Program-made: the position numbers and the translations under genes
NCBI GenBank assembly: GCA_037447605.1
Contig: CM074805.1
Location: 2,203,361-2,267,360 of the forward strand
Reading direction: 5' to 3'
DNA length: 64,000 nt
From: Zygnema circumcarinatum SAG 698-1b
Taxonomy: Eukaryota; Plantae; Zygnematophyceae
In this document: positions 5,689 through 55,800 of the stretch, one piece after another
How positions within the stretch are numbered: position 1 is the stretch's first letter
How the letters are laid out: each line of letters begins with the position of its first letter
Notes under the pieces: generated by a model
The model's database searches: none
What the model saw: only the letters and a program-made list of their open reading frames with translations
Told to the model about the DNA's origin: nothing

Positions 5689-5879
5689 GATGTGGCATTG
5701 ATCTCACGATGGCGATGCCATCAAATGTACATGGAAAAAATCATCATGGGGAATCACGAGGAACTGGTTGCAAAGGACCTAAGAAAAATGCGGTTTTTTC
5801 CATTCTGCAAGGTTATGGCACAAGCCATGAGCGGAACTTTGGTTCTAGGCCCAACAACAACAACGCGGCTCTAGAAGCA
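5689..5879 (+). repeat. Dispersed repeat family X, copy 1
   Basis: GATGTGGCATTGATCTCACGATGGCGATGCCATCAAATGTACATGGAAAAAATCATCATGGGGAATCACGAGGAAC... recurs at 15524, 36041 and on the minus strand at 40323. Confidence 0.85.
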
Positions 5880-7341
5880 CCCCCAAGGCCGCCCGCCGAT
5901 GTGGGCCACGTGGCGCGGAGTGGGCCGGGCCGGAAGGGCATCGACGGTCTCTAACAACCGCAGCGCGTCGAGGGAGCATGGAACTGAAGCGTGAAACGTT
6001 CACAACACGCTATAGCGCGACACTGATCAGCAGTTCCATCTTTTGGATCTAAGCAAGGAAAGGGGTTCGGCAGTTTTACGACAGTTTAACTGCGAAGTAA
6101 ATATTTTACTCATTCCGTCCTATGCATATCAACACTTTGTCGTTCCGCAACTGTCGGCCCAACGACAGACATGAAGATGGCTCGCCAGGGGACGAGAGAT
6201 GGGCGGGGTCATGGACGTATACTGCAGACCGCACCTGCTTCCGCTTCACTACCGAAGGGATGATTTGATCGGGAAATTTGACTGTGTTGCTAAAGACGGT
6301 TGGCATCTCTAGGTCAGCAGGGACTCCCATGTGAATACTGAGGGCTCCTTGATAGTCTAGATATTGCAATATCCGAGTTAAAAAAGAGTGTTTGTGGAAA
6401 TAATTTGTTGCGACTACTTGGCTGCCCAGTCTGCAACCTTTCGTATGCTTTTGCGTTTTTCTCAGGGATCTCCTTTGTATGGAGGGCTTGGGGAAACGTG
6501 AAGAAGGCTGATTGTTCTGAATTATTGCTTTCGTAAGAGAAATGGATCGCATGAACACTAGGTCTTATTGTGGGGCTAAAATGACGAAAAGGGTCAGAGG
6601 CAGATATCATCTGATTGCTTGTCGTCGCGTGATTTCATAAGTATCCAATCTGGACTCGCCGGCTGCCTAGACGTATTGCTTAACATTTTATTCTCAATAT
6701 TGGAGAAGGTCCGAGGTGTAAAAAAATTCTTTCAGTGCTGGAAAAGATAGTACAAGCTGTCTTGGAAGAGTCTCGTATAGTCTGCAAGAATCCTGCTTGA
6801 TATTTTTTACTCATGATAATCTTCCAGCCCACACCATTTTGAAGTAGAGTGAATCACTTTTTGTTAGGTCTGCACAACGCATTCACTTCATCTGCTGGAG
6901 TGCATGTGAGCATTGCAAACGCACCAATTTACAAGGCTGAGGATGGGAAATTGTGCAAAACAAAATCTGCAAACGTCGTAATTGGTAGGAGACCTCTAGG
7001 TGGAAGCATTTCAGACAGATATTTCTTATATTTTAGCCTGTTTGTAACACAACCACTGTCCTTGAGGACCTTAAGGAGATGCAGCCAGATAAAGTAGGTT
7101 CTGAAACGACTGTTGCAAATGAGCAGGCAACACCGTGAACTGTAAATCACAAATGGTAAAATTTATGACGCTTTGATTAGATCATGTTTGAGGACCAAAC
7201 ACCAAACCAATGCACGCTTATTTTATGTTGCACTTGTGCACATGTACAGAGAAGGGCTTTACACTTCTGCTTGGGCAATTTGCTTCTAATAAATCATTCA
7301 GAACAGTAGTGAAACCTGATGATATCTTTCTTTGGACAGGC

Positions 7342-40323: not shown

Positions 40324-41305
40324 ATTTCAACTCCCATGGCTTTCAATTGAAATTTGGGAGCCCAGCGAAGCTGACACACATGAATATCGAAAAGATTTAA
40401 ACATGTTCATATGAAAATGGGCCCTAAGATTGACCGCCCCCACCCCGAAATGTAACTTGGAATTAAAAAATAAGTAAAGCTGTGCCACTAAGTAAACAGT
40501 GAAAACAAGAATACCATTCTCAAGTTCCGTGACCCCAGATATCTCCAAGAGCAGCAATTTAATGACAAACTGATTTTAGGATAAATACAACAGAAAAACA
40601 AGAATTAATTGAGACACGCCGTTGTAGGGTGGCATTCAACACTGGGTTTGCCAAATCAGTTGTTTTTCATAATTTACATTGTCACAGAAACAATCGCACT
40701 TTTTGGATTGCTTCCACCTGATCTTACCACTTCTCTCAGCGCGCCAAGTCCTTGGAATTGGCTCCACATACAGTAACATAGATTTTACCATACACATCAT
40801 GGCTAGACATGGCTAGACTACTAACATGGTTAAGGGATGGCTAAGCTAAAAGAAGGCTTCAGTCTTGTCCGTACTATTTTTCTTGACTTACAGCTCGGCA
40901 AGGCATGGCTTTTTTCGACATAACCGGTAACCATATTGCCAAGCCAGCTACGTCACAATCTTGAAGCCATCTTTTAGCCAAGCCATGCTTTTAATATAAT
41001 CTAGGTAAGTAGCCAATGACTGGTTCGACAAAGTTTGACCGCTAATATGGCCTAGATTCCCTGTATAATGCGCAAGGAGCAAAACATTCCCATCCCTGTT
41101 TATCAAGAGGAGGCCGACAAACCATAAATAGAAGCATTCACAGTGAATTTCCTTTAACTTGTTGTCTACGCCTCAATGACAGTACTGTACATCGAACATC
41201 AGCTCTCACCATGCCGTATGTCCTCATCAGCCATCCGTTCCCATGCTGGCGGATGATGCAGACGAGCTGCGAGCACAGAACAGAGCAACACAAGCACAGA
41301 AAGGT

Positions 41306-41443
41306 GGCACACTCCCTCCGCAGGTGTTACCCTGGTCAGGTTCTAAGGGACTCTCTCAGCCTGCCACATACAGCCCCAGCAACATCCTGCCACAGACTGT
41401 GGTCCGGATGTGCTGCGCTGATGCAGCAAGCACCCCTGGTGCC
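41306..41443 (-). ncRNA. TPP riboswitch aptamer in the THIC 3' UTR
   Basis: Minus strand GGCACCAGGGGUGCUUG-[long P3]-CAGGCUGAGAGAGUCCCUUAGAACCUGACCAGGGUAACACCUGCGGAGGGAGUGUGCC. All TPP core motifs present, closely resembling the land-plant THIC aptamer, ~490 nt downstream of the stop. Confidence 0.97.
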
Positions 41444-41930
41444 ATCCATGTCAGTACACAAGAAGAGCAATATGTGGCCGACCATCCCATTCAACTCATC
41501 TGCATAGCAGATGCTCCTCACGTCGCGACGCTTACAAAGATGTTCCAGACACGACCATTTGCTACTCTAGGTGGACTCAACTAAAGAAAGATCCATGCAT
41601 GCTTTTTTACACTTGTGCAGAACAGCTGTTCACTACAAGCTTGAACTGCTATCCACGCCAAGTCTCCCGAAATCGCAGGAAGTCAAGTTTGCTGCATCCG
41701 AGCCATTGAGATGCGGCACCTCCGCTCTCCACCTCCCGATTCTGCAGCGAGGAGGACAACAAGACAAGCTTAACTTCAATGAAATGTAGAGAATGCACAC
41801 ACAATAATTTGTGGAACAGCAAATCGAAACACGCCTCTTTCAAATCCACTTGCAACCATGTTAAAGTAGGAGTAGAGCTCTATCAAAAGTTGGAATTAAA
41901 GAAGCCCCCTTTACCTGACACAGACTGTCT

Positions 41931-48762
<6,832 letters not shown>

Positions 48763-48940
48763 GAAAGTTATCCAGTAGTTGTAGATATTGTGAGATAAGA
48801 GCCGTTCGTTCGTAGTTTGTTGTTTTTGTTTTTGCTTCTGAACTGTGATTTTCATCCGGAGCATGAGGTAGTCCGTTCTTGGCCCATGCTCTATACATTT
48901 CTCCGAGGTTTTTCTTGCAATCACCTGTCCTGACTTGGTT

Positions 48941-49047
48941 GGCACCAGGGGTGCTTGGAACCCGAGCTCGTGTGAGCTGTGGTGCTTCCAGGCTGAGATC
49001 ATACCCTCAAACCTGAACAGGATAATACCTGCGCAAGGGAGTGTGCC
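48941..49047 (+). ncRNA. TPP riboswitch aptamer 1 downstream of THI1
   Basis: GGCACCAGGGGUGCUUGGAA-[P3]-UUCCAGGCUGAGAUCAUACCCUCAAACCUGAACAGGAUAAUACCUGCGCAAGGGAGUGUGCC. Confidence 0.96.
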
Positions 49048-49255
49048 ATGCTGCTTCCTGCTTTCTTTTGCTGTGGTTTCAGGTGGATTGAAGCTTCCCC
49101 GTGGAAAGTCTGAGGAAACTCAGCCATCCATTTAATGAAGTTGCAGGTGGAATTTAGATCTGCCCGGAAATCCCTCTTTACTGTGCCTGCTTCATTGTCT
49201 TTTCCTTCTTTGTGAATCGGGAACATTTCTCGCTTGATGATGAATGGATGTAACG

Positions 49256-49377
49256 TTTGTGGCACTAGGGGTGCTTGTCCTGGCGGGAAGGAGTGAACTT
49301 CTTTCTGTCAGGCCAGGCTGAGATTATACCCTCATCACCTGACCAGGGTAATTCCTGCGATAGGGAAGTGCTACAAA
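49256..49377 (+). ncRNA. TPP riboswitch aptamer 2 downstream of THI1
   Basis: UUUGUGGCACUAGGGGUGCUUG-[15-bp P3 hairpin]-CAGGCUGAGAUUAUACCCUCAUCACCUGACCAGGGUAAUUCCUGCGAUAGGGAAGUGCUACAAA, with an 11-bp P1. Confidence 0.95.
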
Positions 49378-49410
49378 GTGGTTCTAACCTGGGAGTGGAT
49401 GTGCTCAAAA

Positions 49411-49528
49411 GCATCGGCACTAGGGGTGCCTTCTCTGGTGGCAGCCTGTTGGCTAAAATCAGGGAAAGCTGAGATCATACCCTCAATACCTGAACAGGAT
49501 AATGCCTGCGCAGGGAAGATGTCGATGC
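49411..49528 (+). ncRNA. TPP riboswitch aptamer 3 downstream of THI1
   Basis: GCAUCGGCACUAGGGGUGCCUUC-[P3]-GAAAGCUGAGAUCAUACCCUCAAUACCUGAACAGGAUAAUGCCUGCGCAGGGAAGAUGUCGAUGC. Confidence 0.95.
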
Positions 49529-50752
49529 TAGTTTTGTTACAGGATTTTAAGAAAGATATGGCGCCCATATTTTACATGTGTACTTCCAATGTGAGATCTA
49601 TGATTAAACCTGCAAACCTGAGATGTGTGGTGACTTGCTATGAAATCGTCTTGGGGGAAGCCACGCTTGTATACGTACACATGCATTCCTAGTTCGTTTT
49701 GGATGTGTCGATTGAACAAATGACAGAGGATTTGTTAAAATAAGACGTAGGATAATTGGTGGTGAAATTTTTCCCATGGGAAAGCGAAGGTCGGAATGAA
49801 GGTTGGAAAAGTAAAAAAGAACGGATGTGAGAAGAAAGAATGTGAACGAACATTGCAAACATCTGTACCGACTATATTAGACCGGATAACTGCACCAATC
49901 ATAAATAATCTTTGAAAAACATGTGTACGTGTAGAGATTGAACACTTGGTGGTTTGCAAACCCACTACTTAGAACTCGTAAAGCAGCCTCACTTGTTGGT
50001 TGCTTGAGTGAGAGTAACTGTCGACGTTTTTAGATGGGGAAGAGGTTTTTTTGCTCAGTTGCGTTGGAAAGTCTTCTGTAACTTGTACGTCGTTCTTAAC
50101 GTCCCGTTGAAGAAAGTTACTTGTAGGTTTCTTAATACTGAAAACCTCAACGCGTCCTGACCGCTCTGACGTGACCTGAAATCGTTCATAGCTTCTATCT
50201 CTAGTACCGAATCGAACGGAAAATGTAATCACAGCGGGAGTTGAAATTGTAACTGATGACGATCAGATGGTTGTCTTCACTCGTTTCATACTAGAAGTTT
50301 CCTACTCCCTCTCTATCTATTTTCAGGTTATAGAAAGTTTTTTATATGTTATCGTTTGAAACGAATATGATATATATATTGTTGGATTACAGTCGTGAAT
50401 CGTGAGAAAGACAGGTAGCAAATGCATCGCAATTAAATCTTCTATTACTATGGTTTGTTAAGAGAATAATTCTCTAGTAATTAGATTACGTTTACAGACT
50501 TGGAAATGAGGGGGCATGCTGCGTAATTACTCACTACTAGCTGTCTACAGCAACGATACATGATTAGAAGGGTATAAGATGAAATGATTACCGGTCAATT
50601 CACTTCACCGCAGCGTACTTCACCACCGCTATTTTCGGTACAGTTGGAATACAGTCGATCCGGCTCTTTTACGAACCCTGTTATGCCCCCCCTCTGTAGC
50701 TCTGAAATGGTTTCATGGAGAGGTGACACGCAGTTCTAGCTTATGGAGGCTA

Positions 50753-50913
50753 TAGGGTTAAACCCTAAAAACCCTAAACCCTTACACATTTCTGTGCGTA
50801 TCAAAGGAAGGTTAGGCATTCGTCTGTTAGGTGTTTAGACAATTATTAACAGTTGTGATGGCTACAGCAGACTATCTGAAAGGTTAAAGGTTAAAGGTTA
50901 AAGGTTAAAGGTT
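50753..50913. repeat. Telomere-like/telo-box motifs and (AAAGGTT)4
   Basis: TAGGGTTAAACCCTAAAAACCCTAAACCCT at 50753-50782 and AAAGGTT x4 at ~50879-50913. Confidence 0.6.
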
Positions 50914-51942
50914 TTTGTTAGAAGTGCAGTGGTGAATTGAGCGTAGAGGGCATCCCTTGAAAGGAATTTGCTTGGGTAATAAGAGAATGGCGATATTCGG
51001 AATTGTGAAGGTGGGAAAACCTCCCAACCCAGTTCAAGTCTGAGGTCGCCCTGTTGAAAAACTTAGGAACGTGAAGGGTGGGTCACGGATGTGTGGGGGT
51101 GGTCTGCAAGGTTGTTGAGGCCTGCGTAATGTTTCGTTTGGAGGCTATAGACAGGTTTGTGAAGTTGGCATTGTTGCGTTGTGTAAGGGCAATGTGAAAG
51201 TGCAGCGGACGCCTGCTCGATTTGAAGTGAAGTTACGAGTGGAAGTACAGTGTTCAACGCGCTGTAAGTTGATAGCTCTCTAGCGCCCTGCACTCCCCTT
51301 CAACACCACGCGGGTCTCTAAGTCCGTTTGCCACCCGTATTTGCTGAGTTGCTAGTCACGTTTTCGGTCGTCCTGTAACATGCGCGTTGTGCATGCTGAC
51401 TTCCAACTCCAAACTTACATTCTGATTTTGACAAGCTGACCTAGGACACTAAGACACTAACTGCTTGTTTGCATGAAAGTTATCATTTATGCTTGAAGAA
51501 TCTTGCATCGGATATAAGTAATCTAATTGATGGTTGTTTATTCTAGCTAAACCAAGGCGTTCAGTTGACAGGAAGTGTCTAATTTACAGAAATTGTTAAT
51601 AGTCGGTAACTGGTTTAAGTTGCAACTATGAATACCTTTGCTGAGTGCCACTATCCCAAAAGGGATACGCTGCAACAGCAGCAGCCGGACACAACAGCGC
51701 TCTGGCTGCAGGACTTGTTTTGTTTCAGCGCGAATTTTAAATGGAAGGTAACGGATTATTGTAGATTGTGCACGCGAAATGGCGTCGTCCCAAACTGATG
51801 AATCCGAAGGGGCTGGAAGGTCTTGCATACATGGGTTCAATATTGAAAAGCCGTCAGCATTGACAGCGATTTTTTTAGCGTAGAACTAAATATATATCCC
51901 CAGAACTGGTCCAGGTCTAGCGGTTTATGACAGGAGATTGAG

Positions 51943-52882: not shown

Positions 52883-55800
52883 ATGGCTGCCTCAGAAAGT
52901 ATTGCGGATACGCAATGCAGGTCTGTAAAGCGAGCTTGCAACACGTGTGGTACTGCGGTGTTCTCTCCAGGGCGCTTGCGAGGAGCGCAGTTCCTCGTTA
53001 CTCTCTCGTTGCTAGTGAGCATGGGAGAGGGCCATCTGTCTGGCCCTGGCGTGACAATCGACTACGCCCAAGCTCTACGCAAGGCGCTCGTGTTCTTTGA
53101 GGGGCAGCGGTCGGGGAAGCAGCCGGAGGGTGCTGGCTCTGCACCTTTTCGCAATCTGGCTTGGAGAGGGGACTCTGGACTTGAAGATGGCCGAGAGCAA
53201 GGTATAATCCGCCATAGAAAGTCACCTCCGTATGTTGGGAAAGGAGCGTTTTTATCTGAGTTGTCTTAAAATCAGCTTTTGCCTTTTTTCACTCTTGAAT
53301 TCTTTGGATGTCGTTTTCTGAGGTGACTAGCCAAGCAAAGTTTTACCTCCTTTTAAGCGGACGTTTCTGTCGCTCTTTTTTATGAAGATCTCTCCCCTTT
53401 CAGCTCACATCAAGAATGCAAATGTGGCAAGGTTTCTCCGCAGGTGGTTGCTCGTGGGCTCAGTTGCACCCGCAAATGTAAGGTGAAGTCGATATCACTA
53501 ATTGTGAAGTCCTCTTCTTTGTTCCCTTCCTTCGGCAGGTGTTGATCTTGTAGGAGGGTACTATGATGCCGGTGACAATGTCAAGTTTGGGTTTCCCATG
53601 GCCTTTTCCATGACCATGCTTGCATGGTCACTCATTGAATATGGCGATCGAGTTCAGGCAATTGGAGAATTGGAGACTGCCCTCTTTCATCTGAAGTGGG
53701 GCACTGATTACTTGATTAAGGCTCATACGGCACGCACTGAGTTATGGGGTCAGGTGGGCTTTTTCCTTACCTGCAGACGTTCACTCCATAGCTCCTAATA
53801 GACTGCAGGCTAGTTGCTGATCTGCAAACGTTATGTTGCATACTTTAACATCATTAACTGCTCTCTGGACTATTGGGAGCTATGAGATAGGTGAGGCTTT
53901 TTTGGATTGGTCTGTAGATCTAGGCTCAGCAGGGCACGAAGTTCAACCTACAAATCCAAGTTACTTGTTTGGTTGCTTACATACCGTTAGTGGAAGTTCA
54001 GGACAGTCAATTCCTGAAACTCACTAAATTTCTTAATTTTGTGAGCAATCGGCAATGGGCATTATACGAGATTCGGCATCAAACCTTTGAAATTCGTAGA
54101 GAGTCTGCCGTGCATCAGTCCCACCTTGCATGTTGTGCCTGCTTCATCTGTCAGGAAACGGTCCACAGATTCAGCATTTCATCTCGCGCTCTATTGTAGG
54201 TTGGAGATGCGGTTGACGATCATGCTTGCTGGATGCGCCCTGAAACCATGACAACACGTCGCACAGCATACAAGGTGGATGCCGACAATCCTGGATCAGA
54301 CCTCGCGGGTGAGACAGCGGCGGCAATGGCAGCGGCATCTATCGTATTCCGCAAGGATGCACAGTACTCTTCTTTGCTGCGCAAACATGCTGAGGAGTTG
54401 TTCTCATTTGCTACTCAATATCGAGTGAGACTCGCAACCTCTACGGCTGCATTCATAAAGTCGTTCTCATCGAGTTGCTTTGCTGATCTCTTCGATTTCG
54501 AAGCTTAACAAAGGAAGGAGATTACAGTATTCACCAAATCTTAACATTCCTGTTTGAATTGGTCACTGTTTCTGTTGACAATTACGCTTTGTTGCATGCT
54601 CAAACTGGTCTTGGTCTGCGTCAACCATTGCGTACGTGCAATTTTAAATGCATCTGCCCTCTGCTTTTAGTGACTGTATACGCTTTTTAACCTAATGCCA
54701 TCGATGGACAGAAAATTCAGTTTAGTTTTTATAGATTATTAAGGTATAGGGCCGCACATGCAAAATCTCACTGTCATCTGTGGGTACGACTTTGTTAGAG
54801 AGGTTAGTGATGGCAGTTCTAGTTCTTTTACTTATCATGCATTGCTTTATGGGTACAGGGCAATTACAGCGACAACATGTTTGCAGCGGATGGCTTCTAT
54901 ACCTCTTCCAGTGGCTATGGAGATGAGCTTATCTGGGCTGCAACGTGGCTATTCCGCTCAACAGGAGCTCCGCGCTATCTAAAGTTTGCAGCGGGTGACA
55001 AATCGTCACAATGGGGCTTGCAGAAGCAGCTTATGACAGAGTTTTCCTGGGACAATAAGGACTCTGGTGCCCAAATTTTGCTCACAGTGGTATACATCAA
55101 TTTTTGCACTTAGTTGTTAGCGGTACATGCTTGATATCCTGCTTCATCTTGGCCTTCAGAACAGTGTTTCTTGAATTGTGACTCCTTCTAGCGCTTTTCT
55201 CCACATCGTCACAGATCCGTGCTCTTTCTAGAAGCCTACGGAAGCCACATCAGAAGCTGGCACATATTCACTGCATGTTCCCTTGCATGGTGTGGCAACA
55301 GCTAAAACTGCAAAACTCGGCAAGCATGGCCATTTACGATCCAGCATTGACCAAGTACCGTGCTTTGGCGGAGGGGTATGTCTGCGCTCATGTGGAAATG
55401 ACAGTACAACACACCGATGGTGAGGCACTTCTCGTGTTAAAGTGAATTTGTCTCCAGCTGTCTTGTTGCATTACTGGGATAATCGCCTCACTTCACAGAC
55501 GGATAGAATCACTTATGCACTTTAGGATGTAATTGACGTATCTATACCCTGCATTAGGAGAGGAGAAAGCGAGGCTATCATAATTACTGCTGGTTTTCTA
55601 TAGGGGGGGGAAGCAGTCGTCTACATTGAACGTTCAACAGGGTCATTTGCTGGTCGGTGAACTAGATCATGGTCTCTGACTTCTTGCACATAGTTTTTGT
55701 CCATCGCTTGGGCAAATCCATGCAATAGTGGCAAAAAAAGTGAGGCCATTTGACAGATTTTGTCCGGAAATTTGTTTCTGCCAAACCCATTAAAGCAACA

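Follow-up and report, generated by a model that had tools for sequence, protein, structure and literature searches.

The THI1 locus of the alga Zygnema circumcarinatum SAG 698-1b raises the question of whether a single nuclear gene can carry several complete TPP aptamers in its 3′ UTR and whether such an array could act as a switch. A TPP riboswitch is present in the 3′ UTR of THIC in all plants and in that of THI1 in non-seed plants (PMC10226581, PMC11521341). A first-pass annotation, made from the sequence alone, had described three aptamers past the THI1 stop codon and had given no expression platform, for which the splice-site anatomy found here offers a candidate. We analyzed the window that contains them, a stretch of 64,000 nucleotides from contig CM074805.1, and collected the coordinates of its features in Table 1.

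Table 1. Features of the THIC-THI1 locus (positions in the window) and the evidence for each; splice sites and branch points are candidates from sequence.
Feature	Position	Strand	Evidence
Single TPP aptamer, THIC 3′ UTR	41295..41447	-	Rfam RF00059, 56.1 bits
THIC gene	41931..46578	-	Pfam ThiC_Rad_SAM on two exons; ends read from sequence
THI1 coding exon 1, 205 codons, transit peptide and Thi4 domain	47298..47912	+	Pfam Thi4, E 1e-58; RNA contigs
THI1 coding exon 2, with sulfur-donor Cys motif (SCMDPN)	48084..48383	+	Pfam Thi4, E 3e-43; translation; joints in four runs
THI1 coding exon 3, stop TGA at 48760-48762	48598..48762	+	RNA contigs; sequence
Candidate 5′ splice site D0, GTGAGA, 27 nt past stop	48790..48795	+	Sequence comparison; low PWM score
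Candidate 5′ splice site; overlaps a stretch able to pair with P4/P5 of copy 1	48868..48873	+	PWM 5.4
Branch-point-like CTGAC, A 15 nt before AG 48947-48948 in copy 1	48930..48934	+	
TPP aptamer copy 1, bryophyte-like core, internal acceptor AG 48947-48948	48940..49048	+	Rfam, 53.3 bits; fold; core comparison
Pyrimidine tract and candidate acceptor A_out1, last intron base 49082	49058..49082	+	PWM 14.6, best of 57 UTR AGs
Candidate 64-nt cassette exon 49083-49146, donor at 49147, donor-like site at 49083	49083..49152	+	PWM 7.0 and 7.7
Branch-point-like GTAAC, A 15 nt before AG 49267-49268	49250..49254	+	
TPP aptamer copy 2, 11-bp P1, long P3 hairpin, internal AG 49267-49268	49256..49377	+	Rfam, 60.5 bits; fold
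Linker between copies 2 and 3, 33 nt, branch-like CTCAA at 49404-49408, without strong acceptor	49378..49410	+	
TPP aptamer copy 3, internal AG 49422-49423	49411..49528	+	Rfam, 57.0 bits; fold
Candidate acceptor A_out3, last intron base 49542	49529..49542	+	PWM 10.6, second of 57 AGs
1597-nt GT..AG intron, alternatively spliced	49591..51187	+	Loose end and 1656-nt contig

THIC and THI1, the latter searched against Pfam exon by exon, are arranged head to head with their start codons 719 nt apart, and four aptamers lie within positions 41295-49528. The sulfur-donor cysteine motif read from the THI1 translation is that of the single-turnover type of thiazole synthase, the enzyme for the thiazole half of vitamin B1, which has suicide chemistry (PMC3665906, PMC8454699). 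In a short and roughly supported tree of exon 1, the protein grouped with THI1 of Mesotaenium (support 98/87), in line with a zygnematophyte-like streptophyte source. The head-to-head arrangement was absent at the Closterium loci, where an asparagine-synthase-like gene precedes THI1. Downstream of the array, a GH9 endoglucanase gene begins at 52883.

The presence of three predicted TPP aptamers in tandem in the THI1 3′ UTR was confirmed. Matches to the Rfam model RF00059 covered model positions 1-105 in all three copies (48937-49058, 49257-49383 and 49412-49534), and the minimum free energy fold of each copy taken alone was P1-P2-P3 plus P4-P5, with z values against shuffled sequences of −2.1, −5.7 and −4.6 for copies 1, 2 and 3, respectively. 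The first-pass annotation had expected three separate high-scoring matches. All three were obtained at full length, with the reservation that copy 1 (53.3 bits, E 2.4e-8) fell 1 bit short of the 54.3-bit gathering score, which copies 2 and 3 exceeded; routine Rfam annotation would therefore give two aptamers, not three. Its placement of copy 1 on the sense strand, 179 nt past the stop codon, proved correct, as did the P1 pairings (with the P1 of copy 1 longer by one pair, 48940-49048) and the 15-bp P3 hairpin of copy 2, which was seen in the fold.

The TPP core, which had also been reported for each copy, was found with small deviations in copies 1 and 2. CUGAGA, ACCUGA, the P5/L5 hairpin, GCG and AGGGA are kept in all three, CUGAGA being the pyrimidine sensor and GCG the pyrophosphate sensor motif (PMC9544697). 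J2/4 is shorter by one nucleotide in copy 1, a 2-nt bulge lies ahead of AGGGA in copies 1 and 2, and L5 contains a U in copy 2 and a purine in copies 1 and 3, in Closterium and in the bryophytes. When P1-P5 were aligned for 11 distinct relatives, in an alignment fitted to the model, 96.8% of the cells were paired and four pairs had two-sided changes. Among themselves the copies differ at 8-10 of 67 core positions, and their P1, P3 and spacers are wholly different. Capture of the THIC aptamer by THI1 was considered and rejected, with 12-18/67 core differences to THIC against the 8-10/67 among the copies. A search for a fourth, decayed copy near 49590-49620, using a custom model with filters off, gave no match.

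RNA contigs from four runs, belonging to four studies, skip both coding introns and then continue through all three aptamers, matching 48597-49591 or beyond with zero differences. The array is therefore not an assembly artefact, in agreement with the claim made from the sequence, and not silent DNA. These contigs, which drop minor isoforms and are not equivalent to single molecules, extend past aptamer 1 and cross all three copies, and no joint into or across the aptamers was seen in those of the four runs. The only alternative intron observed starts 62 nt past copy 3. In run X6 it was spliced at a depth of 66 and retained at a depth of 22, as shown by a loose end at 49591 whose sequence resumes at 51188 and, for the retained form, by a contig of 1656 nt (1597 + 59); it was also retained in contigs of the three other runs. 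By rough arithmetic, RNA past copy 3 amounts in X6 to about a fifth of the coding depth, part of which could stem from another transcript, e.g., that of the downstream GH9 gene.

Several further observations were made in and around this region. Near 51265, a strong GTAAGT donor follows the exon behind the intron (51188-51270), contigs of runs X1 and X7 extend about 3.8-4 kb beyond 50200 towards the GH9 gene, and telomere-like short repeats (units like TAAACCC and GGTTAAA) occupy 50755-50915 inside the intron. Another TPP aptamer, with a CTGAC branch motif upstream of P1, occurs on a 415-536-nt contig in runs X1, X2 and X7. The sequences flanking this aptamer resemble neither those of THIC nor those of THI1 and do not occur in the window, and the organism thus has at least five aptamers, the fifth at another locus.

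A survey of THI1 3′ regions in related algae, which the first-pass annotation had proposed, revealed that the tandem arrangement is not unique to the Zygnema genome. Two tandem aptamers follow the THI1 stop codon in Closterium (NIES-53, two assemblies fetched with the NIES-68 protein, and Naga37s-1), a doublet newly found here and for which we found no earlier description. Between NIES-53 and NIES-68 the two aptamers are identical at 87/87 and 93/93 positions, against 80 of 100 third codon positions and about 60-65% of intron 2; the doublet is the same in the third strain, and the identity includes the P3 loops. Complete identity next to 80% at third positions indicates that both Closterium copies are under strong selection. 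In total, 180 of 180 aptamer positions are identical between these two strains.

Bryophyte-type THI1 loci (Sphagnum, Calypogeia, other mosses and a liverwort-like contig) had one aptamer in 12 of 12 cases. The core of copy 1 is nearest to the bryophyte cores (7-8/67 differences), and copies 2 and 3 have variant sites and close spacing in common with the Closterium pair. No branch of the aptamer tree was supported, so that shared ancestry of the 2/3 pair with the Closterium doublet is a lead and not a result. The exact tandem DNA pattern, which does recover the Closterium loci, gave 0 matches in JGI metagenomes, and 80 metagenome THI1 loci contained no tandem, only single aptamers in nine moss-like loci. 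The closest protein relative, the public transcript contig L008, ends 264 nt past the stop codon with no aptamer within that length and thus says nothing on aptamer number; the Chara THI1 flank runs into an N gap about 340 nt past the stop. Mesotaenium, Spirogloea, Netrium and Chlorokybus were represented by proteins without contigs.

The same comparison yielded some side observations. The Closterium inter-aptamer linker (L002:7777-7827, L004:9426-9474, L093:7175-7222) forms an 11-bp hairpin with conserved arms and a variable loop. A Ceratodon THI1 paralog (L001, about 5750-5830) gave no aptamer match and retains P5 and GCG remnants after a GTAAGT donor, which suggests a decayed riboswitch; the same contig has a U1 snRNA gene at 6797-6955. 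At Calypogeia THI1 (L011:5500-5775), the end of the last exon and the following donor are duplicated in tandem. Two proteins of about 550 amino acids, P0138 and P0139, scored as two Thi4 domains, and one of them is labelled amphipod.

In the THI1 UTRs of bryophytes, a GTAAGT donor is found soon past the stop codon, a CTAAT branch motif lies 14-15 nt before the P1/P2 AG, and a pyrimidine tract with CAG follows the AGGGA of the aptamer at 24-29 nt. The window repeats this splice-site layout in the form of candidate sites (Table 1). D0 (48790) occupies the position of the bryophyte donor, and branch-like motifs precede the internal AGs at 48948, 49268 and 49423 by 15, 15 and 16 nt, respectively. 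A branch motif lies 14-16 nt upstream of the internal AG in all three copies, in THIC and in 6/6 bryophyte THI1 aptamers, compared to a frequency of 7.8% among background AGs. Using a splice PWM built from 18 donors and 18 acceptors, all selected by eye, and a cut-off of 10.6 chosen after the fact, we detected an acceptor within 50 nt past the aptamer for copies 1 and 3, for THIC and for 6/6 bryophytes, compared to 1.4% of background windows. The PWM scan of UTR AGs found no strong acceptor directly after copy 2. Acceptors after copies 1 and 3 and none after copy 2 point to two modules, copy 1 and copies 2+3, each of which has donor and acceptor candidates; the top two donors by PWM (49083 and 49147) fall between copies 1 and 2. 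The THIC aptamer has the same layout of branch motif, internal AG and downstream acceptor as the THI1 copies. Past it, the THIC tail (41267-41209, minus strand) shows an acceptor, a 58-nt exon-like piece and a GTGAGA donor, in parallel to 49542-49591 at THI1.

In plant and green-algal aptamers the P2 AG is an alternative 3′ splice site (PMC9544697), and in the known plant mechanism a 5′ splice site is paired with P4/P5 (PMC10226581). As acceptors, the internal AGs have low scores in copies 2 and 3 (−1.7 and −6.0), and the aptamer consensus itself includes this AG. The best duplexes with P4/P5 overlap donor-like sites and reached −15.9 kcal/mol for copy 1 (p ~0.09-0.27) and −21.2 for copy 2 (p 0.03-0.05). 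The corresponding THIC control was not significant, and the masking signal at THI1 is marginal (p ~0.03-0.27).

Building on the directly observed sequence, fold, transcription, doublet conservation, splice-site layout and single downstream alternative intron, we propose with a probability of roughly 0.58 that the array is a plant-type TPP riboswitch expanded to a two-module splicing/3′-end switch that would shut off THI1. Copy 1 would form module 1, and the closely spaced copies 2 and 3 would together form module 2; both would be intron-like units, with an upstream donor, a branch point, an aptamer containing the P1/P2 acceptor AG and a second acceptor just past the aptamer. Binding of TPP would refold the aptamers in the pre-mRNA, and the choice of splice and poly(A) sites would shift to long, intron-marked 3′ UTRs, which would decay; in plants, introns far past the stop codon trigger mRNA decay. 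When TPP is plentiful, a costly single-turnover, Cys-type thiazole synthase would be switched off in this way, and RNA escaping the first checkpoint would meet the second, with less leak and a lower TPP level needed. TPP binding, the junctions used and the direction and size of the effect are what we infer here.

The first-pass annotation had suggested a steeper or layered shut-off. We calculated that, with three checkpoints acting independently, the 90-10% range would be 32-fold instead of 81-fold (Hill ~1.26), the EC50 would be 0.26 Kd (about 4-fold lower) and the leak at 10 x Kd would be <0.1% instead of 9% (about 100-fold lower). The relative EC50 would be 1, 0.41 and 0.26 with one, two and three copies, and each copy would lower the leak about 10-fold. 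For tandem copies that act independently, a Hill value of ~1.19-1.26 would be expected, and the gain would thus lie mainly in tightness more than in steepness. In a stronger version of the proposal, each of the three copies would work as a checkpoint in a single serial splicing cascade, for which there would be no earlier eukaryotic description, and copies 2 and 3 would form a linked pair that is cooperative or tuned to another B1 form than copy 1; this pair would date far back in the zygnematophyte algae, which are sister to land plants, and the array would have been reduced to one aptamer in bryophytes and to none in seed-plant THI1. We regard this version as doubtful. Aptamer-linked splicing as such has against it the lack of joints at the aptamers, the marginal P4/P5 masking, the weak AGs in copies 2 and 3, the Closterium doublet without splice signals and a precedent in diatoms.

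Copy 1 has the full bryophyte layout in addition to its bryophyte-like core, the stable THIC mRNA of Arabidopsis is cleaved upstream of the aptamer (PMC10226581), and low-scoring internal AGs are found in the other two copies. These observations are what would be expected if copy 1 alone were the working riboswitch, as in bryophytes, with on-state mRNA mostly ending before or near copy 1 and copies 2 and 3 serving as a redundant back-up that acts only on transcripts reading through and hardly alters the dose response. We consider this unlikely: copies 2 and 3 surpass copy 1 in both Rfam score and fold stability, Closterium keeps the doublet alone and perfectly conserved, RNA past copy 3 is substantial in X6, and AATAAA is absent ahead of copy 1.

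That branch and acceptor signals stand at fixed distances here and in bryophytes despite diverged flanks argues against sensing of TPP without aptamer-linked splicing, with control exerted by the choice of poly(A) site, by the 1597-nt intron downstream, or at the level of RNA stability or of translation. Nor did any copy show notable complementarity to the 49591 donor (just −3.9 to −5.4). Control of this kind appears rather improbable, even though the contigs lack joints at the aptamers and their sole alternative intron lies past copy 3, the Closterium doublet is located about 20 nt past the stop codon without splice signals, and many algal aptamers sit in unspliced UTRs (PMC4260697).

Diatom 3′-UTR (THIC) aptamers are conserved but not regulatory (PMC9544697), and with this direct precedent and no regulated isoform seen in the RNA contigs, the Zygnema aptamers might be conserved while THI1 is not thiamine-regulated by them. 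We judge this to be very improbable, as the diatom aptamers have no P2 acceptor whereas the Zygnema copies have one, the plant and green-algal versions tested to date do switch, and the 100% conservation in Closterium extends to the P3 loops. An assembly artefact or a recent neutral tandem duplication, for which no supporting evidence was found, has a negligible chance, being already refuted by the RNA contigs of four studies, which match with zero differences, and further opposed by the divergence of P1, P3, spacers and cores among the copies and by a doublet in another genus.

Collectively, the array is real and transcribed, a doublet is present in Closterium too, and the switch function is predicted. 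Zygnema THI1 has three aptamers where a single one is present in land plants and nearly all other eukaryotes. It may therefore be one of the few natural eukaryotic RNA switches with several checkpoints, tandem riboswitches having so far been described nearly always from bacteria. If it acts through splicing, it would show how the spliceosome and the 3′-end machinery can accommodate a series of ligand checkpoints, and could serve as a model for building protein-free gene switches of greater tightness in algae and plants. A step would also be added to the history of how THI1 is controlled: zygnematophyte algae with two or three aptamers, bryophytes with one and seed plants with none.

The Zygnema array shares with the plant 3′-UTR riboswitch the aptamer class, the gene, the position in a transcribed UTR and the orientation, and with moss and liverwort THI1 the branch motif, the internal P1/P2 AG and the downstream acceptor. 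It differs in having three aptamers instead of one, a further alternative intron of 1.6 kb and THIC head to head. The coding introns of Zygnema THI1 are at the same positions as those of Closterium, where the aptamers also lie close together (about 35-50 nt apart) and, as in copies 2 and 3, have GAC-CAGG-G as the variant of the first and GAA-CAGG-A as that of the second. In contrast, the Closterium doublet has no equivalent of copy 1, begins much nearer the stop codon, contains the linker hairpin and does not adjoin THIC. It has neither branch motif nor downstream acceptor, and its copy 2 is missing the internal AG; the doublet may therefore work differently.

As for the rarity claimed by the first-pass annotation, no eukaryotic triple and no green-lineage tandem TPP riboswitch was reported in the literature searched, which covered few subscription papers; a eukaryotic multi-aptamer gene is nevertheless known, NMT1 of Saprolegnia, with two TPP aptamers thought to derive from duplication (PMC5882874), beyond which the same literature gave nothing on tandem TPP in eukaryotes, Zygnematophyceae or Closterium. 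Both are eukaryotic thiamine genes with more than one TPP aptamer. In Saprolegnia two copies are located in 5′-UTR introns of an oomycete gene of the pyrimidine branch, whereas in Zygnema three are located in the 3′ UTR of a green-lineage gene of the thiazole branch. In bacteria, 213 tandem TPP cases have been recorded, one of them a triple, with pseudo-cooperative behavior (PMC9481103). Like these, the Zygnema array places several complete aptamers of the same class serially on one RNA as possibly independent checkpoints; unlike them, it lies in the 3′ UTR of a spliced nuclear gene without terminators or ribosome-binding sites, and its platform is probably splicing or 3′-end processing.
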